Assembly: GCA_950097015.1 (NCBI GenBank)
Contig: CATNEN010000008.1
Span: 2,542,001 to 2,606,000, forward strand
Direction: 5' to 3'
Source of the DNA: Macrostomum hystrix
Taxonomy: Eukaryota > Animalia > Platyhelminthes
DNA length: 64,000 bases
The position numbers and the translations under genes are program-made. The notes under the pieces are model-generated. The model was given only the letters and a program-made list of their open reading frames with translations. It ran no database searches and was not told the DNA's origin. Below are positions 15,851 to 38,867 of this stretch, one piece after another (the first letter of the stretch is position 1; every line of letters begins with the position of its first letter).

Positions 15851-16125
15851 AAATAAAGCAGATTGTGCCAATTATCACTGAGGAACTTCTAGAAGGTTTG
15901 ATGTCCGAAAACTGCTTCACTAAGTGAAGGCGAGCTTCATTTAGATCATCGTCAGCCTTTTATTTGATTCGTAGTGAACAGTGTTACTCTCTGGATCATC
16001 AAATCATATCACAGGTGCCGATTCATTCAAATTAAGGATATCAGTGAATCAGCTTTCATTTCTGGGTTGATTTCAGCAGAAAAATATTTACTGATTTCAA
16101 GATTCTAAAATTGGCCAAGTCCACT

Positions 16126-19100
16126 ATGCTTCTACTGCTCCTAGCACTGCCTATTTCCATAGCAACTGCAGCCTTTGAGTTGCCGATTCGCAGGAGCCGA
16201 GTGCTCAGCTCCTGGCAGTCATCCTTCGATGACGGACCGACTTGCTTCAGCAACAGAAGCCTCGCTGATGAGGAAAACGTTGTAAAGAACAAAGCTTACA
16301 GCTACAGGTTCTTCCACAGCAAAAACAAAGACCATGCAGACGGAGGATTTCATTGGTTCGCAGTGCAGCTGAATGAGTCAGTGCTCATCAGATCGGTCAC
16401 TGTGAAGGGCAGAGAGGGTGAGTCACTGCTCAATTTGTTCCATGCACTTTAGATTCCACTGCTTAGTCGTGAAGTTCTCACTTTTAGATAGCGCTGCCTT
16501 TGTCCAATCGAGAGCCAGAGACATCGAGATCTGGACATCGAGCAGCAGCAGTCAGCTGTTCTCAGGTGATCACTGCAGCTCAAGAAGCATGAGCAGCCAG
16601 TTCAACAAGTCTCAGCAGCTCTGGAGACTGTGCGGCCTGACGGTGAGCAAGCACAAGGATATCCAGCCTCATGGTGAGATCTTCACCGTGAACTGCTCAG
16701 CGGAGGTGAGACCTGCTCTGTGCCTTGATTTGTGCTCTGTTGAGTTCTGGATCCCACTGAGATTTCATCTGAACTCCAGGTCAGACACTTGCTGCTGCGA
16801 AAGAACATCACTGTGTCATATTATTCTGAGGACATCATGAGCTTCGCAGATCTCAGGCTTCAGACTGTGCAGCTGAGTGAGTTCGGGTCTATTACTATGG
16901 ACACATTGGTGTCAAAGGGACCTATCGTTGTCTTTTTTGAAATTCCGAAATTCCGCTAATTAAGCAATGTCGATTAGATGATTTAAACAACTCCAGAGTC
17001 CTCAGCGCCTCAGCTGGTGTCTCAGAGCTCAAAGTTTAGCGTGAGCTGCTGGCTGGAATGCGATGGAGCAGAACTCAACTCGAGCTCAAGCGAGCTGCAG
17101 CTGTGCTCTCCCAACGACAACTGCATAAACGGCCATGAGCTGCACATTGGCAGTGCTCAGCCTGAGCACTCAGGTGACTACAGGTGCAGATTCGGCTCGG
17201 TTGCGAACACATCCAGTGTCAGTGTGCTGAGTGAGTTTAATATTAAAGTAATTTCTCAAATAGGAAGTTCGAGTTCGAAATTTCAATGGTAACTTATATT
17301 TTTCAGCGGCCTCCGTGGATCAGGTGGTGGCCATCAACTCGAATTTCACTGTGAGATGCGAGCTGCACTGCAACAGCTCACAGCTGTGCTCAAACTCTAG
17401 CGGACTCCAGCTCTGCCTTCCGAACGGTACCTGTATTGCAGAACACAAGACAGCAGTGGCTCAAGCTCTGCCTGATCACTCTGGAAAGTACTCTTGCAGA
17501 CTTGGCTCTGTCAGCAAGCAGACCTCAGTCACCGTGCTCTGTGAGCAGATTTTCTACTTTTTTATGCTCGTAACTTTTAAAGAATAATAAGGGCCTGAAA
17601 GCGGGACATTTTGCGCTTCAGATCGTCGCTTGGACCAATTAGTGAAACAATGAAAACAATAAAGCAGAAACTGGTCAGGGGAAAATTCATCCAATGACGA
17701 TGGTCGAAAGCTGAATGCAAAAACAATAATAAATTATAAGAGAAAGAAACATAACTAATGACACAAGCAAAGGTGTCAATGGTGTAATAACACCAAAAAT
17801 GATTGTTTATTGAACTACAATATAAGTTGAAATTGGTCAAAAGTAAAAAGCATACAGCACAAAACCTCAACTGACACAATGTCCACAGCACAAAACCTCA
17901 GCTGACACAATGCCCACAGCACAAAACCTCAGCTGACACAATGCCCACAGCACAAAACCTCAACTGACACAATGTCCACAGCACAAAACCTCAACTGACA
18001 CAATGTCCACAGCACAAAACCTCAACTGACACAATGTCCACAGCACAAAACCTCAACCGATACAATGTCCACATCACAAAACCTCAACTGACACAATGTC
18101 CACATCACAAAACCTCAACTGACACAATGTCCACATCACAATACCTCAACTGACACAATGTCCACAGCACAAAACCTCACCTGACACAATGTCCACAGCA
18201 CAAAACCTCAACCGATACAATGTCCACATCACAAAACCTCAACTGACACAATGCCCACGGGCATGGTGGCAAAACCCCAAGTCAATTGAAACACCAATGG
18301 CCAATTTGACCATCAACTATGGCTCATGGAATTCATGACTCGTTGATAAACTCACTCCACATAGATACTAGATTCCAATGCCTTTGAGTGCATCCGTACC
18401 ATTTACTCGTCACAGAGACTTCAGTCACATAAAATGCATTCGATCGCTATTAGTTTATCTGTTTATCATACAAGCTGGTCAAAATATTTTTTCAGCGGCC
18501 TCCGCGGATCAGGTTGTGGCCGTCAACTCGAATTTCACTGTGAGATGCGAGCTGCACTGCAACAGCTCACAGCTGTGCTCAAACTCAAGCGGACTCCAGC
18601 TCTGCCTTCCGAACGGTACCTGTATTGCAGAACACAAGACAGCAGTGGCTCAAGCTCTGCCTGATCACTCTGGAAAGTACTCTTGCAGACTTGGCTCTGT
18701 CAGCAAGCAGACCTCAGTCACCGTGCTCTGTGAGCAGATTTTCTACTTTTTTATGCTCGTAACTTTTAAAGAATAATAAGGGCCTGAAAGCGGGACATTT
18801 TGCGCTTCAAATCGTCGCTTGGACCAATTAGTGAAACAATGAAAACAATAAAGCAGAAACTGGTCAGGGGAAAATTCATCCAATGACGAAGGTTATAAGT
18901 TGAAATTGGTCAAAAGTCAAAGTCAAAAGGCAGTGACGTTGATTTTGGAAACAGACGAGCATTGAGCAGCAGCTCCCAAAAACCTCGCAGAGAATTTCAG
19001 CCCAGCAAGACAAGCTTCATCCGGTTGCTCTCAAGAATGGCACCATGGATGCAGAGCAGCTAATTTAGAAGAACTGCACCTGCGATTGCCATGAAGCACT

Positions 19101-22100
19101 GCTTACGATTCACCTCAGTCCACGAAACAGGGACACCAAGAGGGTGCTTCGTGATGTCTATCACGCTAAAAGAGTGAAATTTGCGACACCAATGTCCACA
19201 GCACAAAACCTCAACTGACAATGCTCACAGCACAAAACCTCAACTGACAATGTCCACAGCACAAAACCTCAACTGACAATGTCCACAGCACAAAACCTCA
19301 ACTGACAAAGCTCACAGCACAAAACCTCAACTGACAATGTCCACAGCACAAAACCTCAACTGACACAATGCCTACGGCATGGTGGCAGAAACCCAAGTCA
19401 ATTGAAACGCAAATGGCCAATTTGACCATCAACTATGGCTCATGCAATTCATGAACTCGTTGATAAACTCACTCCACATAGATACTAGATTCCAATGCCT
19501 CTGAGTGCATCCGTACCAATAAAATGCATTCGATCGCTATTCGTTTATCTGACTATCATACAAGCTGGTCAAAAATTTTTTTCAGCGGCCTCCGCGGATC
19601 AGGTGGTGGCCGTCAACTCGAGTTTCACTGTGAGCTGCGAGCTGCACTGCAACAGCTCACAGCTGTGCTCAAACTCAAGCGGACTCCAGCTCTGCCTTCC
19701 GAACGGTACCTGTATTGCAGAACACAAGACAGCAGTGGCTCAAGCTCTGCCTGATCACTCTGGAAATTACTCTTGCATCCTTGGCTCTCTGCAGACGCAG
19801 ATCCCAGTCACCGTGCAGTGTGAGTGAGCATCCAGAATTTTTCAATTATTTGTTCTCATAACAAATATTTCAGCTGCAATTTATAACAGCATCTCAAATT
19901 CCCGCCAGACCCGCCATCGAGTCTATCGATAAAATTCCTGGAAAGCTGCAAAAGCATGGCAAGAATAACGGTACAGTTCAGATCATCTGCTTCTCACCCA
20001 CTGCCTGAGCACACGTGCAACTTTCAAGCTGGCGAACTCAATGAAAAAAATGTCTCTCTGCTTTCACAGGTGAGTTGCATTCCGTATGACTCTCGAAACA
20101 CACTGTTGCACAACACTCGCAACGCATCACACTGTACTATATGAAACTGCAGGTGTCAGACAACAGGGGCCTCCTTAGCACGTGGTCGCTCGACAGCGGT
20201 GTCGAGCATGACATGAGCAAGAGCGATGTCCTTGTCAACTGCAGTGCGGCACAGAACCTCCCTGGGAACATGACTTTCGGCTCACCTGTTTACGCCACGG
20301 CTCGACTCGACTGCCCTGGGGCTGGGCTCGCGACTTTCACGATTGCTGTCTCAGCCACCATCGTTTTCGTTGTTGTGTCAGTAATCTGCGCTGCATGCTT
20401 TCTGCTCATCTCGAAGGTCAGTGCAGGAAAATGTGGCGATCGTGCCCTTCAGCAGCTGAACCTTCTGAACCTTTCCATTGCAGCTCCGAGTGCCGTCAAC
20501 TGAGCCTTCAGCAGCCGAGCTTAACCTGAGCTCAGGCACTCAGGACAAATCTAAAGTGTCACCTGAGGTGGTTCATCCGTCTAATTAGGTAAGTCAACGA
20601 GCCACTTAGACTTCAGCGAACAAACAGGGGCAGTCCTGTCCAAGAAATGCCACTTTTCTTATCCATAAAACTCGTTATTTGACAACAATGGCTACTTGGC
20701 TACAGTGGCTACTTGGCTACAGTGGCTATACTTGGCTACAGTGGCTACTTGGCTACAGTGGCTACTTGGCTACAGTGGCTACTTGGCTACAGTGGCTACT
20801 TGGCTACAGTGGCTACTCGGCTACAGTGGCTACTTGGCTACAGTGGCTACTTGGCTACAGTGGCTACTTGGCTACAGTGGCTACTTGGCTACAGTGGCTA
20901 CTTGGCTACAGTGGCTACTTGGCTACAGTGGCTACTTGGCTACAGTGGCTACTTGGCTACAGTGGCTACTTGGCTACAGTGGCTATACTTGGCTACAGTG
21001 GCTACTTGGCTACAGTGGCTACTTGGCTACAGTGGCTACTTGGCTACAGTGGCTACTTGGCTACAGTGGCTATACTTGGCTACAGTGGCTACTTGGCTAC
21101 AGTGGCTACTTGGCTACAGTGGCTACTTGGCTACAGTGGCTACTTGGCTACAGTGGCTACTTGGCTACAGTGGCTATACTTGGCTACAGTGGCTACTTGG
21201 CTACAGTGGCTACTTGGCTACAGTGGCTACTTGGCTACAGTGGCTACTTGGCTACAGTGGCTATACTTGGCTACAGTGGCTACTTGGCTACAGTGGCTAC
21301 TTGGCTACAGTGGCTACTTGGCTACAGTGGCTACTTGGCTACAGTGGCTACTCGGCTACAGTGGCTACTTGGCTACAGTGGCTACTTGGCTACAGTGGCT
21401 ACTTGGCTACAGTGGCTACTTGGCTACAGTGGCTATACTTGGCTACAGTGGCTACTTGGCTACAGTGGCTACTTGGCTACAGTGGCTACTTGGCTACAGT
21501 GGCTACTTGGCTACAGTGGCTACTCGGCTACAGTGGCTACTTGGCTACAGTGGCTACTTGGCTACAGTGGCTACTTGGCTACAGTGGCTACTTGGCTACA
21601 GTGGCTACTTGGCTACAGTGGCTACTTGGCTACAGTGGCTACTTGGCTACAGTGGCTACTTGGCTACAGTGGCTACTCGGCTACAGTGGCTACTTGGCTA
21701 CAGTGGCTACTTGGCTACAGTGGCTACTTGGCTACAGTGGCTACTTGGTTACAGTGGCTACTTGGCTACAGTGGCTACTTGGCTACAGTGGCTATACTTG
21801 GCTACAGTGGCTACTTGGCTACAGTGGCTACTTGGCTACAGTGGCTACTTGGCTACAGTGGCTACTTGGCTACAGTGGCTATACTTGGCTACAGTGGCTA
21901 CTTGGCTACAGTGGCTACTTGGCTACAGTGGCTACTTGGCTACAGTGGCTACTTGGTTACAGTGGCTACTTGGCTACAGTGGCTACTTGGCTACAGTGGC
22001 TATACTTGGCTACAGTGGCTACTTGGCTACAGTGGCTACTTGGCTACAGTGGCTACTTGGCTACAGTGGCTACTTGGCTACAGTGGCTATACTTGGCTAC

Positions 22101-23000
22101 AGTGGCTACTTGGCTACAGTGGCTACTTGGCTACAGTGGCTACTTGGCTACAGTGGCTATACTTGGCTACAGTGGCTACTTGGCTACAGTGGCTACTTGG
22201 CTACAGTGGCTACTTGGCTACAGTGGCTACTTGGCTACAGTGGCTATACTTGGCTACAGTGGCTACTTGGCTACAGTGGCTACTTGGCTACAGTGGCTAC
22301 TTGGCTACAGTGGCTACTTGGCTACAGTGGCTATACTTGGCTACAGTGGCTACTTGGCTACAGTGGCTACTTGGCTACAGTGGCTACTTGGCTACAGTGG
22401 CTACTTGGCTACAGTGGCTACTCGGCTACAGTGGCTACTTGGCTACAGTGGCTACTTGGCTACAGTGGCTACTTGGCTACAGTGGCTACTTGGCTACAGT
22501 GGCTACTTGGCTACAGTGGCTACTTGGCTACAGTGGCTACTTGGCTACAGTGGCTATACTTGGCTACAGTGGCTACTTGGCTACAGTGGCTACTTGGCTA
22601 CAGTGGCTACTTGGCTACAGTGGCTACTTGGCTACAGTGGCTATACTTGGCTACAGTGGCTACTTGGCTACAGTGGCTACTTGGCTACAGTGGCTACTTG
22701 GCTACAGTGGCTACTTGGCTACAGTGGCTACTTGGCTACAGTGGCTACTTGGCTACAGTGGCTACTTGTCAGTAGTGTTTCCATTTCATTTCCGAAACTA
22801 AATGAGTGCTCAAGGCTGCTCTGATTTCAGACAACCAACGGCTTCGATTCCGAATGCTGCTACTTGACTGTGTGTAGCATACCAGCGACTGATGCCGCTG
22901 CTGCTGCTGGTGCTGCTTTGGAGGGGCAGGACACAGACAGCGACTGCTGCACTGACTACATTGAGATTGTTGCTGTTGGCGACCTCAGCCATAGATTAAT
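16126..23000 (+). CDS. Type-I membrane receptor: signal peptide, F-type-lectin/discoidin-like domain, 4 Cys-rich Ig-like modules, FN3-like region, TM helix, cytoplasmic tail
   Basis: Exons 16126-16417, 16488-16705, 16780-16876, 16997-17230, 17307-17540, 18496-18729, 19586-19819, 19874-20069 (needs +1 nt), 20153-20416 (TM: FTIAVSATIVFVVVSVICAACFLLI), 20484-20567 or 20588, and a probable exon from 22831. The modules are phase-1 234-nt exons ending in [ED]HSG[DKN]YxC. The lectin-like part has FFHS..HWFAVQL..VLIRSVTV.GRED. The 3' end is uncertain. Confidence 0.7.
17860..18260. repeat. Minisatellite, 31-bp unit CACAGCACAAAACCTCAACTGACACAATGTC; a shorter-unit variant array lies at 19190-19372
   Basis: Tandem copies lying between the duplicated Ig exons. 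Confidence 0.92.
20689..22768. repeat. Minisatellite, 17-bp unit GGCTACAGTGGCTACTT (about 120 copies, with a 19-bp variant)
   Basis: Near-perfect tandem array in a receptor intron; gives three spurious 700-aa ORFs. Confidence 0.98.
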
Positions 23001-23061
23001 CACAACTGCACATTTTGGAGTGATTTTAGAGCTCGAAATTCTTGCATACCTTTGCAATACT

Positions 23062-23219
23062 GATTGTACCATGACTACGTGGCTATCGGGCGGGCTGATA
23101 TTCGATTATTGCCATAGACGATGTCATTTTGGCCCGAAAAGTTGGGCCGATAATGGATTATTTTTGTGTATTTTAACGTATAGCCACATACTATAAGCCA
23201 CATAGTCTATGGTACAATC
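23062..23219. mobile_element. MITE-like element with about 24-bp terminal inverted repeats
   Basis: Left GATTGTACCAT-GACTACGTGGCT; the reverse complement of the right end reads GATTGTACCATAGACTATGTGGCT. Confidence 0.6.
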
Positions 23220-24127: not shown

Positions 24128-24465
24128 CCTGCACGATGGGGATCAGGACCCGGCAGCTGATGGATTTGTGGCAAGCATCCACGATGGGGATCAGGACCCG
24201 GCAGCTGATGGATGTGTGGCAAACATCCACGATGGGGATCAGGACCCGGCAGCTGATGGATGTGTGGCAAACATCCACGATGGGGATCAGGACCCGGCAG
24301 CTGATGGATGTGTGGCAAACATCTACGATGGGGATCAGGACCCGGCAGCTGATGGATGTGTGGCAAACATCCACGATGGGGATCAGGACCCGGCAGCTGA
24401 TGGATGTGTGGCAAACATCCACGATGGGGATCAGGACCCGGCAGCTGATGGATGTGTGGCAAACA
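24128..24465. repeat. Minisatellite, 48-bp unit ACGATGGGGATCAGGACCCGGCAGCTGATGGATGTGTGGCAAACATCC
   Basis: 7 tandem copies. Confidence 0.95.
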
Positions 24466-26200
24466 TGTGTCAAGGATGACAGGGGGATGCCAAGGAAGAT
24501 GGGGGAGGGGACTGTCAAGGATGGCAGGGGGATGCCAAGGAGGATGGGGAGGGGACTGTCAAGGATGGCAGGAGGATGCCAAGGAGGATGGGGGAGGGGA
24601 CTGTCAAGGATGGCAGGGGGATGCCAAGGAGGATGGGGAGGGGACTGTCAAGGATGCAAGGGATGCCAAGGAGGATGGGGGAGGGGACTGTCAAGGATGG
24701 CAGGGGGATGCCAAGGAGGATGGGGGAGGGGACTGTCAAGGATGGCAGGGGGATGCCAAGGAGGATGGGGAGGGGACTGTCAAGGATGGCAGGGGGATGC
24801 CAAGGAGGATGGGGGAGGGGACTGTCAAGGATGGCAGGTGGATGCCAAGGAGGATGGGGGAGGGGACTGTCAAGGATGGCAGGGGGATGCCAAGGAGGAT
24901 GGGGAGGGGACTGTCAAGGATGCCAAGGATGCCAAGGAGGATGGGGAGGGGACTGTCAAGGATGGCAGGGGGATGCCAAGGAGGATGGGGGAGGGGACTG
25001 TCAAGGATGGCAGGGGTATGCCAAGGAGGATGGGGGAGGGGACTGTCAAGGATGGCAGGGGGATGCCAAGGAGGATGGGGGAGGGGACTGTCAAGGATGG
25101 CAGGTGGATGCCAAGGAAGATGGGGGGAGGGGACTGTCAAGGATGGCAGGAGGATGCCAAGGAGGATGGGGGAGGGGACTGTCAAGGATGGCTAGGGGGA
25201 TGCCAAGGAGGATGGGGAGGGGACTGTCAAGGATGGCAGGGGGATGCCAAGGAGGATGGGGAGGGGACTGCCAAGGATGGCGGGTGGATGCCAAGGAAGA
25301 TGGGGGGAGGGGAGTGTCAAGGATAGCAGGGGGGATGCCAAGGAGGATGGGGAGGGGACTGTCAAGGATGGCAGGGGGATGCCAAGGAGGATGGGGAGGG
25401 GACTGTCAAGGATGGCGGGTGGATGCCAAGGAGGATGGGGGGAGGGGACTGTCAAGGATGGCAGGGGGATGCCAAGGAGGATGGGGGAGGGGACTGTCAA
25501 GGATGGCAGGGGGATGCCAAGGAGGATGGGGAGGGGACTGTCAAGGATGCCAAGGATGCCAAGGAGGATGGGGAGGGGACTGTCAAGGATGGCAGGGGGA
25601 TGCCAAGGAGGATGGGGGAGGGGACTGTCAAGGATGGCAGGGGGATGCCAAGGAGGATGGGGGAGGGGACTGTCAAGGATGGCAGGGGGATGCCAAGGAG
25701 GATGGGGAGGGGACTGTCAAGGATGGCAGGTGGATGCCAAGGAAGATGGGGGGAGGGGACTGTCAAGGATGGCAGGAGGATGCCAAGGAGGATGGGGGAG
25801 GGGACTGTCAAGGATGGCTGGGGGATGCCAAGGAGGATGGGGAGGGGACTGTCAAGGATGGCAGGGGGATGCCAAGGAGGATGGGGAGGGGACTGTCAAG
25901 GATGGCAGGTGGATGCCAAGGAAGATGGGGGAGGGGACTGTCAAGGATGGCAGGGGGATGCCAAGGAGGATGGGGGAGGGGACTGTCAAGGATGGCAGGA
26001 GGATGCCAAGGAAGATGGGGGAGGGGACTGTCAAGGATGGCAGGGGGATGCCAAGGAGGATGGGGAGGGGACTGTCAAGGATGGCAGGGGGATGCCAAGG
26101 AGGATGGGGAGGGGACTGTCAAGGATGGCAGGTGGATGCCAAGGAAGATGGGGGAGGGGACTGTCAAGGATGGCAGGGGGATGCCAAGGAGGATGGGGAT
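24466..26200. repeat. G-rich minisatellite, about 44-46-bp unit GGGGGATGCCAAGGAGGATGGGGGAGGGGACTGTCAAGGATGGCA
   Basis: About 38 tandem copies. Confidence 0.97.
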
Positions 26201-26744
26201 TGAATATTTGAGTTTGCGAGTACATATTTATCATTTTTGTACTCACCTATGATCGGATGCACAGTCACAGGAGTAGGTTCAACTCTAAGTAGATCTCACC
26301 TACTTTAAGGTATCTTTAAGGTGTCTTTAATGTACATTGGGCAGTGTAATGTATGACAAAATCTGAACGTACTATTTAGAAGAAAACTTTTCCAAGTTAT
26401 ATATAACCAGCTTGAAAATCAATTTAACAGATTTACTAATCCAACTGGTGGGTTTGCCTTCAATCCGCGAGCAGTATCAGCGACGAGAGCTGCATCGATA
26501 GATATAAAATATCTTTATGAACGTCCCAAACTGCTACTTATAGGTAAAAACATTGCGACTTCCCCAGAAGTCTGCAGTCTGCAGGCGAATGAAGAGCAAA
26601 AAATTGCAGATAAAAGATTTTCGTGCAATCTGCTAAATTACTCTCAGGATTTCAATAGTGGGTCAACCATAGGGCATCTGCGAGATAGACTGAGGAAAGG
26701 CTTAAAAAGTTTGGAGCGTAGAATCAAAAGGATGCCAGCTGTTC

Positions 26745-27235
26745 GACAGCAGCCTCACCTGTAAGCCAGTAGCCTCACCTGTTTGACAGTAGCCTCACCT
26801 GTAAGACAGTAGCCTCACCTGTTTGACAGTAGCCTCACCTGTAAGACAGTAGCCTCACCTGTTTGACAGGTAGCCTCACCTGTAAGACAGTAGCCTCACC
26901 TGTTTGACAGTAGCCTCACCTGTTTGACAGTAGCCTCACTTGTTAGACGGTAGCCTCACCTGTAAGACAGTAGCCTCACCTGTTAGACAGCAGCCTCACT
27001 TATTAGACAGTAGCGTCACCTGTTTGACAGTATAGACTCACCTGTTTGACAGTAGTCTCACCTGTTTGACAGGAGCCTTACCTGTTAGACAGTAGCCTCA
27101 CCTGTTAGACAGTAGCCTCACCTGTTTGACAGTAGCCTCACCTGTTTGACAGCAGCCTCACCTATTTGACAGTAGCCTCGCCTGTTTGACAGTAGCCTCA
27201 CCTGTTAGACAGTAGCCTCACCTGTTTGACAGTTA
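26745..27235. repeat. Minisatellite, 20-bp unit GACAGTAGCCTCACCTGTWW
   Basis: About 24 copies. Confidence 0.95.
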
Positions 27236-35599: not shown

Positions 35600-37665
35600 C
35601 GTCACATCCCAAGTACCCTCTCAGATCCCCAGTTCCCTCTCACATCCCCAGTACCCTCTCACATCCCCAGTTCCCTCTCACATCCCCAGTACCCTCTCAC
35701 ATCCCCAGTACCCTCTCACATCCCCAGTTCCCTCTCACATCCCCAGTACCCTCTCACATCCCCAGTTCCCTCTCACATCCCCAGTACCCTCTCACATCCC
35801 CAGTACCCTCTCACATCCCCAGTTCCCTCTCACATCCCCAGTTCCCTCTCACATCCCCAGTTCCCTCTCACATCCCCAGTTCCCTCTCACATCCCCAGTA
35901 CCCTCTCAGATCCCCAGTTCCCTCTCACATCCCCAGTACCCTCTCACATCCCCAGTTCCCTCTCACATCCCCAGTACCCTCTCACATCCCCAGTACCCTC
36001 TCACATCCCCAGTTCCCTCTCACATCCCCAGTACCCTCTCACATCCCCAGTTCCCTCTCACATCCCCAGTACCCTCTCACATCCCCAGTACCCTCTCACA
36101 TCCCCAGTTCCCTCTCACATCCCCAGTTCCCTCTCACATCCCCAGTTCCCTCTCACACCCCCAGTTCCCTCTCACATCCCCAGTACCCTCTCACATCCCC
36201 AGTTCCCTCTCACATCCCCAGTTCCCTCTCACATCCCCAGTTCCCTCTCACATCCCCAGTACCCTCTCACATCCCCAGTTCCCTCTCACATCCCCAGTAC
36301 CCTCTCACATCCCCAGTTCCCTCTCACATCCCCAGTACCCTCTCACATCCCCAGTTCCCTCTCACATCCCCAGTACCCTCTCACATCCCCAGTACCCTCT
36401 CACATCCCCAGTTCCCTCTCACATCCCCAGTTCCCTCTCACATCCCCAGTTCCCTCTCACATCCCCAGTTCCCTCTCACATCCCCAGTACCCTCTCACAT
36501 CCCCAGTTCCCTCTCACATCCCCAGTTCCCTCTCACATCCCCAGTTCCCTCTCACATCCCCAGTACCCTCTCACATCCCCAGTTCCCTCTCACATCCCCA
36601 GTACCCTCTCACATCCCCAGTTCCCTCTCACATCCCCAGTACCCTCTCACATCCCCAGTTCCCTCTCACATCCCCAGTACCCTCTCACATCCCCAGTTCC
36701 CTCTCACATCCCCAGTTCCCTCTCACATCCCCAGTACCCTCTCACATCCCCAGTACCCTCTCACATCCCCAGTTCCCTCTCACATCCCCAGTACCCTCTC
36801 ACATCCCCAGTACCCTCTCACATCCCCAGTACCCTCTCACATCCCCAGTACCCTCTCACATCCCCAGTTCCCTCTCACATCCCCAGTTCCCTCTCACATC
36901 CCCAGTTCCCTCTCACATCCCCAGTTCCCTCTCACATCCCCAGTACCCTCTCACATCCCAAGTTCCCTCTCACATCCCCAGTTCCCTCTCACATCCCCAG
37001 TTCCCTCTCACATCCCCAGTACCCTCTCACATCCCCAGTTCCCTCTCACATCCCCAGTACCCTCTCACATCCCCAGTTCCCTCTCACATCCCCAGTACCC
37101 TCTCACATCCCCAGTTCCCTCTCACATCCCCAGTACCCTCTCACATCCCCAGTTCCCTCTCACATCCCCAGTTCCCTCTCACATCCCTAGTACCCTCTCA
37201 CATCCCCAGTTCCCTCTCACATCCCTAGTACCCTCTCACATCCCCAGTTCCCTCTCACATCCCCAGTACCCTCTCACATCCCCAGTTCCCTCTCACATCC
37301 CTAGTACCCTCTCACATCCCTAGTACCCTCTCACATCCCCAGTACCCTCTCACATCCCCAGTACCCTCTCACATCCCCAGTTCCCTCTCACATCCCTAGT
37401 ACCCTCTCACATCCCCAGTTCCCTCTCACATCCCTAGTACCCTCTCACATCCCCAGTTCTCTCTCACATCCCTAGTACCCTCTCACATCCCCAGTTCCCT
37501 CTCACATCCCTAGTTCCCTCTCACATCCCCAGTTCCCTCTCACATCCCCAGTTCCCTCTCACATCCCCAGTTCCCTCTCACATCCCCAGTTCCCTCTCAC
37601 ATCCCTAGTACCCTCTCACATCCCCAGTTCCCTCTCACATGCCCAGTACCCTCTCACATGCCCAC
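35600..37665. repeat. Minisatellite, 19-bp unit CACATCCCCAGTWCCCTCT
   Basis: About 108 copies with an A/T dimorphic position. Confidence 0.98.
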
Positions 37666-38867
37666 TATCTTCACAAGTCCCTAGAAATATAAAAAACTAT
37701 AAACAAAGATGGTGAGCCACAAAAGCGAAATCTGCTTTCAGATGCTAGGAAAAGCTTTATCAATTGCACATGTTTTTATCATCCATATATGTATATTTAT
37801 GTTTAGTAATTTGTTAGAGACAACGCGAACACAATGTAGTTTTATGTTCGTTCGATGTGACTTTCAGCTGGGTAGCTCATAGACATTTCGCGACTTATCG
37901 CCGAAAGCTGACGAACCAATCCGGGCTGATGTGGTCTGAAAATGTGTGTAATCGTATCGATAGAGACTTACTTCTCTACTTAAAGTAGAGTAGTTGAAAT
38001 AAGCGCTCTATTTAATAAACAGAGCCCTAAATAAAGTTAAGATAACTCATTCCTATCAGCTGCCTTCACTCGTGTGAGCACTGTGCGAACCGGCAAGGAG
38101 TGTAGAATTTCATGTGCAAACATATAAATATCTACTTTGAATTTAGATGCTAATAACTTAACTCATCGAGCTTCATTTCAATCTGAAAATTTCTCTTTGA
38201 AATGTGAGCCGATTGAAATTAAAAGCTGACGAACTCATTAAGCAATGAAAATAGTTTGCTAGCTTCAAGAGACAAAGAGAACCTGTATCAGGTGTGCTTA
38301 TATTCACCTTACTCATCCTATTAAGAAGAGAAGAGAACAAGCATATTGCCTGAACTTGATTTGGCAATAGACATATGTAAGGCGGCTGTAGAAACTAGGG
38401 TGGGTGTGGTGATCCCCACAGTCCATGGACTGAAAACTGCATGGGTTGGGTGTCATATCTATATTCTCACTATTAAATATTGATCAACAAACAGATAGAC
38501 CTCAGTTGTTGAAGACTGAATCAGTTAAGAATTACAGCTAGGCGACACTAAAAACACCTGCAAAACTCCGCGCAGTCCTTCACTAAGATAATGATTTGAG
38601 AGCGGCCAACTCACGGCCCGCTTATCAGCTCTGCTCCTTGGCCTTTCAATTAGTGACCGACCCCCAATCACGTACGTAGCAACAACGTTTTGCTGTTGTT
38701 AGATCGCTGAGCATTGGACTGATCCAAACGGCGGAGATGATAAGGCTGACGCTGATAACAAATTGGCTACAAATAAGGCCGCCCAGCTGAGCAGTTGATC
38801 GCTCCGCTCCGCTGACTCCCCTCATCAACTGTCGCCATTTCCAATCCGATTCTACCAAAGCCGCGCC

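Follow-up and report, generated by a model that had tools for sequence, protein, structure and literature searches.

Gene structure and organization

The window analysed here is a 64,000-nucleotide stretch of Macrostomum hystrix DNA (assembly GCA_950097015.1, contig CATNEN010000008.1, positions 2,542,001 to 2,606,000 of the forward strand), and all positions below are its own unless stated otherwise. From 16126 to about 23000 on the + strand it contains a transcribed gene of 11 exons for a membrane protein. The predicted product begins with a signal peptide and a lectin-like head, and continues with a stalk of four short immunoglobulin (Ig)-like modules, a longer Ig-like domain next to the membrane and a single transmembrane (TM) helix; its short cytoplasmic tail ends at an in-frame TAG, ahead of an exon for two tyrosine motifs that relatives in M. 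lignano translate. The coordinates of the exons and of the associated repeats are collected in Table 1.

Each exon was translated separately by script, and relatives were searched for exon by exon. Behind the ATG at 16126 lies a hydrophobic leader with a 19-residue Kyte-Doolittle mean of 2.15, in line with the signal peptide recognized in an earlier reading of the letters alone (the sequence-only reading). Every inferred intron begins with a GT donor of the GT(G/A/C)AG type and ends with an AG acceptor, and open frames and canonical splice sites are kept in all ten coding exons. Exons 4 to 7 are each 234 nt long, with phase 1 at entry and exit and AG/GT sites. No paralogue of the family was found inside the window.

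Transcription and splicing

Transcript data were taken from one small public run (X1), whose Logan contigs were aligned to 16100-20680; the run contains 22% of the sampled words of this interval. Seven introns are spliced in these contigs. Exact GT..AG joints connect exon 1 with exon 2, exon 5 with exon 6, exon 6 with exon 8 and, in two contigs, exon 9 with exon 10, while slightly offset alignments at exons 2-3 and 8-9 are consistent with the predicted joints. Exons 10 and 11 are joined by a contig that matches 20488-20588 without difference and runs on with the letters starting at 22831. Because of these joints the run is taken to be cDNA-like and the exons to be joined in RNA.

The joint of exon 6 to exon 8 (18729 to 19909) lies in an exact-match contig in which exon 7 is skipped. 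Mutually exclusive use of the Ig exons is ruled out, since a single contig carries exon 5 spliced to exon 6. Several X1 contigs, which show mismatches and different joints, derive from paralogues. One contig has letters resembling the 17-nt satellite directly before 20045, inside exon 8, which suggests either a paralogue or an unspliced or rearranged copy with the satellite elsewhere.

Table 1. Exons of the gene and repeats in its introns.
Feature	Position	Strand	Evidence
Exon 1: start codon, signal peptide, first 77 aa of head (FHWFAVQL, G-R-E and split Asp codon)	16126..16417	+	Sequence, splice sites; GT..AG joint 16417/16488
Exon 2: mid head	16488..16705	+	Contig 16487-16710 with 1 mismatch; aligns with M. 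lignano paralogues
Exon 3: final head strands, phase 1 exit	16780..16876	+	Offset joint 16710 to 16787 (2 letters between) fits 16705/16780; paralogue alignment
Exon 4: Ig-like module 1, five Cys, older, divergent	16997..17230	+	Splice sites, frame; Pfam Ig_3/ig/Ig_2 E 0.004-0.02
Exon 5: Ig-like module 2, six Cys	17307..17540	+	GT..AG joint 17540/18496; Ig_2 E 4e-4
Exon 6: Ig-like module 3, recent duplicate of exon 5	18496..18729	+	Exact-match contig over exon 5-6 joint; joint 18729/19909 to exon 8
Exon 7: Ig-like module 4, six Cys	19586..19819	+	Splice sites, frame; skipped in exact-match contig
Exon 8: first half of predicted membrane-proximal Ig-like domain, starts Y-P-P-S-S	19909..20069	+	Acceptor 19909 used in two contigs
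Exon 9: second half of predicted membrane-proximal Ig-like domain, membrane helix	20153..20416	+	Hydropathy; offset joint to exon 8; GT..AG joint 20416/20484 to exon 10 in two contigs
Exon 10: 34 cytoplasmic codons without Tyr, then in-frame TAG (20586-20588) as last codon	20484..20588	+	Contig exact over 20488-20588, continues into exon 11
Exon 11: homologue of the family's tyrosine-motif tail; 3' untranslated region in observed transcript	22831..23196	+	Contig end at 20588 continues with letters from 22831; tail alignments
31-nt minisatellite, 13 copies, intron after exon 5	17854-18258		Tandem Repeats Finder
29-nt minisatellite, 6 copies, intron after exon 6	19190-19365		Tandem Repeats Finder
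17-nt satellite, ~121 copies, fills last intron	20685..22768	.	Tandem Repeats Finder

Family range and the paralogues of M. lignano

A phmmer search with the mature part of exon 1 against 1.84 billion representatives returned 11 proteins, nine of which are real relatives; all nine are UniProt entries of M. lignano except for one JGI metagenome fragment (P0009). A word search with the profile of the head alignment gave the same set together with BOX15_Mlig012084g1. The window's own protein is absent from the protein collections, the best identity over exon 1 being 78% among representatives of clusters at 50% identity. Judged from these searches, the family is restricted to Macrostomum apart from the metagenome fragment. 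This fragment, a 1598-nt contig of JGI sample 3300040801, has an uninterrupted open reading frame (ORF) with 36% identity to the exon 1 query and may represent a transcript from a different small flatworm.

The M. lignano locus of BOX15_Mlig012084g1 (NIVC01002544.1:89160-111382) carries a fragment and three tandem family genes, whose Ig modules number 0, 3 and at least 2. The four modules of the window copy are the largest count among the family genes compared, so the variable-length stalk that the sequence-only reading had proposed is borne out by the paralogues, as it is by the skipping of exon 7. Since the clustered M. lignano genes share one architecture with differing module counts, the order of head, n Ig modules, membrane-proximal domain, TM helix and tail is a family trait, with a stalk length that depends on the gene. 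Within this locus the fragment occupies about 1689-2196 of the opposite strand, the end of a protein kinase gene is at 1137, and the gene referred to as gene B has a simple repeat in the intron after exon 8.

Some of the database models of these genes are composite or abbreviated. The UniProt entry P0001 (A0A1I8JLC6) is a chimera of the tail of one family gene and the first exon of the next, and models of the P0002 type jump from head exon 1 straight to an Ig module. The automatic UniProt names (Sushi, CUB, MATH, fibrinogen, coatomer zeta, ricin B) are rejected, with no Pfam support for them in the members scanned.

The lectin-like head

The head is an N-terminal domain of about 180 aa encoded on exons 1 to 3. 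Exon 1 encodes FHWFAVQL and then R-E-D, the Asp codon being split over the joint with exon 2, and a further Arg follows after seven residues (x7-R); the motif had been recorded in this form by the sequence-only reading. The fold was computed on a natural paralogue, residues 18-208 of P0018, with the family alignment as input; this segment is 54-61% identical to the three head exons of the window. The AlphaFold model has a pLDDT of 75.7 and a pTM of 0.80. Compared with the PDB using Foldseek it matches only galactose-binding-type sandwiches (E about 1e-4), among them the carbohydrate module of EndoS, the F5/8-C domains of chitobiase, the F-type lectins 1K12 and 3CQO, CBM32 modules, the FVIII C2 domain and neuropilin b1. 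VIA-align places the eel F-type lectin 1K12 first (Z 11.7, root-mean-square deviation 2.7 over 136 of 158 residues, 18% identity), and scores striped bass MsaFBP32 (3CQO) at Z 11.0 and the lectin domain of lectinolysin at Z 10.7; these F-type lectins, at 17-18% identity, are the best structural match.

Searches of the Atlas point in the same direction. With the shape of the head, 10/10 among the matches listed are of the galactose-binding type (F5/8 type C or BgaA-like carbohydrate-binding modules), and a language-model search with exon 1 recovers F5_F8_type_C_2 clusters at 0.95. When the family profile of the head is compared with PDB sequences its sole match is 1K12, with a non-significant E of 0.88. 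On the paralogue model, the head is a galactose-binding-type beta-sandwich closest to the F-type lectins, and the sandwich that the sequence-only reading had expected is thereby recovered.

F-type lectins have a fucose motif of the form H-x24(26)-R-x-D-x4-(R/K) and a calcium motif h2DGx (PMC5712786). R79 and D81 of 1K12 align with the R-E-D of the window, and the head has in common with these lectins both the R-x-D of the sugar motif and the W-(W/F)-x-V-x-L core, whereas an F-type lectin domain is roughly 140 aa and the window head about 40 aa longer. We predict that the head is probably ligand-binding and that its ligand is most likely a glycan. As the fucose triad and the calcium motif are both incomplete, sugar binding is something that we infer only.

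The Ig stalk and its duplication

The four modules of the window align without gaps, and C17, C21, C36, C42 and C63 as well as H-S-G-x-Y-x-C are invariant among them. Each has the (D/E)-H-S-G-x-Y-x-C strand and lacks Trp at the canonical strand-C position, both of which had been noted from the letters alone. The four phase-1 exons of 78 aa described at the same time are also present, but the six Cys attributed to every module occur in modules 2-4 only, module 1 having five. When three M. lignano modules are added, C17, G59, Y61 and C63 are invariant over all seven; there is no invariant Trp in either alignment, of four or of seven. Pfam yields only sub-threshold Ig matches, the best being Ig_2 at E 4e-4. 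A profile of the seven modules matches 207 PDB sequences at E<=1, and 60/60 of those listed belong to the Ig superfamily (IgSF), with Dpr4 (4.5e-6) and Fc gamma RI (2.7e-5) the best. These profile matches identify the modules as true IgSF domains.

Exons 5 and 6 differ at 4 of 231 nt and lie within a 300-nt unit of 99% identity. Between exons 6 and 7 there are 16 nt differences, mostly non-synonymous (12.7 vs 3.3; dN/dS about 1.2, from small counts), and the counts are too small for any statement about positive selection between the two. Module 1 is about 48% identical to modules 2-4, with a dS of about 1.2 against them, and its closest counterpart, at 55%, is the first module in an M. lignano paralogue; by sequence divergence it is older than modules 2-4. 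The near-identity of exons 5, 6 and 7 indicates recent growth of the stalk, by tandem duplication of a unit of exon plus intron ~1.1-1.2 kb long. The 31-nt and 29-nt minisatellites are related to one another and form part of the duplicated unit, and their copy number differs between units.

The membrane-proximal domain and the membrane helix

The acceptor used at the start of exon 8 is 19909, where the protein reads Y-P-P-S-S, comparable to Y-P-P-L-S in the paralogue P0002. The PPDPP that the sequence-only reading took for the start of a fibronectin type III (FN3) domain contains ten intron bases. An FN3 domain in exons 8-9 is ruled out: there is no Pfam match for one, and the paralogue model is Ig throughout. 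This model, of P0002:106-300 (one module and the membrane-proximal domain, pLDDT 67.5), matches two-Ig structures throughout, including IgLON5, NEGR1 and PD-L1 (E 1e-6), neuroplastin and DIPs. The membrane-proximal domain is thus modelled as a fifth, longer Ig-like domain split over exons 8 and 9.

The membrane helix predicted by the sequence-only reading lies in exon 9 and has a Kyte-Doolittle mean of 2.98 over 19 aa. It contains no charged residue and so does not suggest an adaptor-coupled activating form.

The tail exon and the premature stop

Exon 11 encodes E-C-C-Y-L-T-V and T-D-Y-I-E-I-V-A, and its first 48 residues align with the C-terminus of P0004/P0019 (BLASTP E 3e-4). In a four-way alignment of tails C-x-Y-L-x-V and S-D-C-T-x-(Y/F)-x-x-I-V-A are conserved, with the Tyr of the second motif replaced by Phe in M. 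lignano gene B. T-D-Y-I-E-I fits the immunoreceptor tyrosine-based switch motif (ITSM) T-x-Y-x-x-(V/I). C-C-Y-L-T-V has Cys at -2 and is hence not a canonical immunoreceptor tyrosine-based inhibitory motif (ITIM), (S/I/V/L)-x-Y-x-x-(I/V/L).

The exon order in M. lignano gene A of the family equals that of the window gene, with a TM exon (phase 0), a 105-nt exon and a tail exon. The 105-nt exon of gene A ends with CGC AAG/GTGAGA and the 105-nt exon 10 of the window with AAT TAG/GTAAGT, so that an in-frame TAG stands at the codon homologous to the gene A Lys; the same TAG is present in the observed spliced transcript. Because it precedes exon 11 in that transcript, the predicted protein lacks both tyrosine motifs and has a tail of 34 residues with no tyrosine. 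The motifs lie within the translated tail in paralogues P0019 and P0004. The exon for CCYLTV and TDYIEI described by the sequence-only reading is therefore encoded as stated and is homologous to paralogue tails, but the phosphatase-recruiting tail built upon it falls away for this copy, in which the motifs stand behind a stop codon.

The usual stop of the family, after I-V-A-D-x-x, is also lost in the window, and the frame of exon 11 is open to 23196 (121 codons, ~70 of them beyond the lost stop). As the tail motifs are still recognisable, the nonsense codon would appear to be recent. A stop at the last exon junction escapes nonsense-mediated decay by the usual 50-nt rule, and the presence of mRNA fits a stop too close to the last junction for such decay.

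The 17-nt satellite in the last intron has 96% matches, and all three of its forward frames are open for ~700 codons, which gives rise to false large ORFs.

Interpretation and alternatives

We favour the interpretation that the gene is expressed and belongs to a family of type I membrane proteins restricted to Macrostomum, with a lectin-like head, an Ig stalk and a tail that has been lost at the TAG, and give it a probability of about two in three. In this family an F-lectin-like head would be placed at the tip and held off the cell by two to four short Ig modules and the longer Ig domain, and the number of modules would determine how far from the membrane it binds its ligand, probably a glycan. 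In complete members C-x-Y-L-x-V and T-x-Y-x-E-I, ~27-32 residues apart, may be phosphorylated to dock SH2 proteins; alternatively, they could act as Y-x-x-hydrophobic sorting signals. The window copy would bind without signalling through these motifs, as a tail-less, decoy-like variant or as a plain adhesion molecule. Of the membrane-bound glycan sensor put forward by the sequence-only reading, the type I membrane protein, the lectin-like head and the Ig stalk are retained, whereas the glycan-sensing part meets an incomplete fucose triad and calcium motif.

Several observations weigh against this interpretation. The folds come from paralogue models and not from the gene's own joined protein. 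Although the F-type lectin fold is recovered on P0018, the fucose motif, the calcium motif and the sequence models of such lectins are not matched. The fucose-binding His52 of 1K12 aligns with an Asp in the window; a His stands one residue after that Asp but is not conserved in paralogues, and the third basic residue of the motif comes after 7 residues, not 4. At the place of the calcium motif, the A-I-D-G of 1K12 aligns with a non-matching stretch of the family profile, which has no h2DGx there. In no part of the gene does a Pfam model pass its cut-off, whether in single exons or in the M. lignano relatives: F5_F8_type_C gives E 0.11 on exon 1 of the window, below cut-off, and PF22633/PF00754 give a best E of 0.0084 on P0004, with 16.7 bits against a cut-off of 28.2. 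In the VIA-align ranking IFT25 and CBM32 modules tie with the F-type lectins within 1 Z unit. On the transcript side, the library type of run X1 is not on record and its RNA nature is deduced from the splice joints. The sequence-only reading had made its proposal depend on exons being joined in transcripts, which holds for the seven spliced introns, but exon 4 has no depth in the run, exon 7 is skipped in the exact-match contig and reads map to several near-identical modules; exons 4 and 7 are predicted parts of the mRNA. Lastly, with a stop codon gained and the family's normal stop lost, the copy may be decaying and not a decoy.

The incomplete fucose triad and calcium motif would also be expected if the head were not a lectin at all and bound a non-glycan partner, as do the FV/FVIII C2 domains (lipid), neuropilin b1 (peptide) and IFT25 (protein), with a role in adhesion or in gamete or mate recognition and not in immunity. 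This view gains from the presence of IFT25, FVIII C2 and neuropilin b1 in the list of structural matches. The top Z scores and sequence identities, however, go to fucose-binding F-type lectins, the R-x-D of the fucose motif is kept in the window copy, and the Atlas matches listed are all carbohydrate-binding-type modules (10/10). We consider a non-lectin head possible but somewhat unlikely.

Less probable still is that the gene is a decaying pseudogene, in which a nonsense codon removed a functional tail, selection was relaxed and the transcript is leftover expression. The ectodomain is unbroken, all ten coding exons have open frames and canonical splice sites, and spliced mRNA is present; these observations speak against decay, although the TAG where gene A has AAG, the loss of the normal stop after I-V-A-D with its ~70 additional codons, the mostly non-synonymous changes between exons 7 and 6 and the skipping of exon 7 in a contig are what decay would produce. 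The recognisable tail motifs imply a recent stop, and since a stop at the last junction should evade nonsense-mediated decay, a truncated protein should be made.

A full-length signalling isoform, made by skipping exon 10 or by using an upstream donor (GAG/GTGGTT at 20567/20568), is very improbable: both routes are in frame (exons 9 and 11 are both phase 0) and exon 11 has 121 open codons with both motifs kept, but in X1 exon 9 runs into exon 10 in two contigs and 20588 into exon 11 in another, with no bypass joint seen, the A at +4 and G at +5 common to all ten inferred donors are missing from the upstream donor, and the homologous exon 10 belongs to the coding path in gene A.

Comparison with known receptor families

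The closest likeness in layout is to the Siglecs, in which the sugar-binding domain is a V-set Ig domain followed by a variable Ig stalk, one membrane span and a tail with an ITIM-like motif and a distal T-x-Y-x-x-(I/V), and whose genes form tandem clusters with tail variants. Paired ITIM-like and ITSM motifs are found in the tails of Siglecs and of PECAM-1, and the two motifs of the flatworm paralogues resemble these. Complete members of the flatworm family share the layout of the Siglecs, including the CD33-related ones, with a putative glycan-binding tip, a variable Ig stalk, one TM helix and two tyrosine motifs, and their genes likewise form tandem clusters with tail variants. They differ in the fold of the tip (a galactose-binding-type sandwich and not a V-set Ig domain) and have no sequence relationship to them, and the tail of the window copy is cut off. 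By analogy, the family could be a flatworm counterpart of such paired lectin receptors, in which clustered genes have in common a rapidly changing F-lectin-like head while stalk length and tail class vary, with tail-less copies acting as decoys or counterweights in the recognition of self and non-self, of microbes or of mates; we offer this as a speculation that is more likely to be wrong than right by a good measure.

The molluscan FREP, CREP and GREP proteins combine Ig domains with a C-terminal lectin domain of the fibrinogen, C-type or galectin kind and are secreted. The flatworm family shares the combination of Ig and lectin-type domains, but its lectin-like domain is N-terminal, has another fold and is anchored in the membrane; by domain order, fold and anchoring, membership of this group is ruled out.

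Invertebrate IgSF families with ITIM-like tails, or with tails like the immunoreceptor tyrosine-based activation motif (ITAM), include Hydractinia Alr (PMC9546547), Botryllus fester and uncle fester (PMC12582321) and oyster NCAM1 with ITIMs (PMC11841013). As far as the available portions of these sources describe them, they resemble the flatworm family in being clustered, fast-diverging, taxon-restricted IgSF genes with tyrosine-motif tails, and the Ig domains of Alr, like the flatworm modules, are without a canonical residue; the same portions mention no F-lectin-like head, unlike the flatworm family. A role in colony allorecognition is not expected, because Macrostomum is solitary.

For proteins with F-type lectin domains the partners listed in two reviews are the C-type lectin domain (CTLD), the HTLD, pentraxin, complement control protein (CCP) repeats, TM segments and FA58C, and Ig is not among them (PMC5712786, PMC12221842). 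Drosophila furrowed and CG9095 are membrane proteins in which an F-type lectin domain occurs (PMC5712786), there combined with CTLD and CCP repeats and not with Ig, and they have no detectable sequence link to the flatworm family.

No description of the family was found in the literature searched, including searches for Macrostomum with F-type lectin and for six UniProt accessions, and the architecture matches no well-described family there, in keeping with the sequence-only reading, which did not recognise it from flatworms. We regard it as a genus-restricted family, undescribed in that literature, that combines known parts: an F-lectin-like fold, an Ig stalk and a tyrosine tail. Little is known about innate recognition receptors in flatworms, and Macrostomum is a genetic model open to transgenesis and RNA interference. 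If the reading is right, the Siglec-like design would have been invented independently here, as a lectin-type head on an Ig stalk with a tyrosine-motif tail. The window locus adds a natural tail-less variant that arose from one nonsense codon at the last exon junction, and a clear example of a stalk lengthened by the very recent tandem duplication of an Ig exon. Should the head not bind sugar, the family would still be an undescribed, genus-restricted group of surface proteins.

Other features of the window

Downstream of the gene, 24132-26198 and 26739-26999 contain G-rich satellites of 48 nt and 45 nt, with a GC skew of +0.54, together with a 20-nt array. Farther along, 36001-38000 has an extreme GC skew of -0.71.

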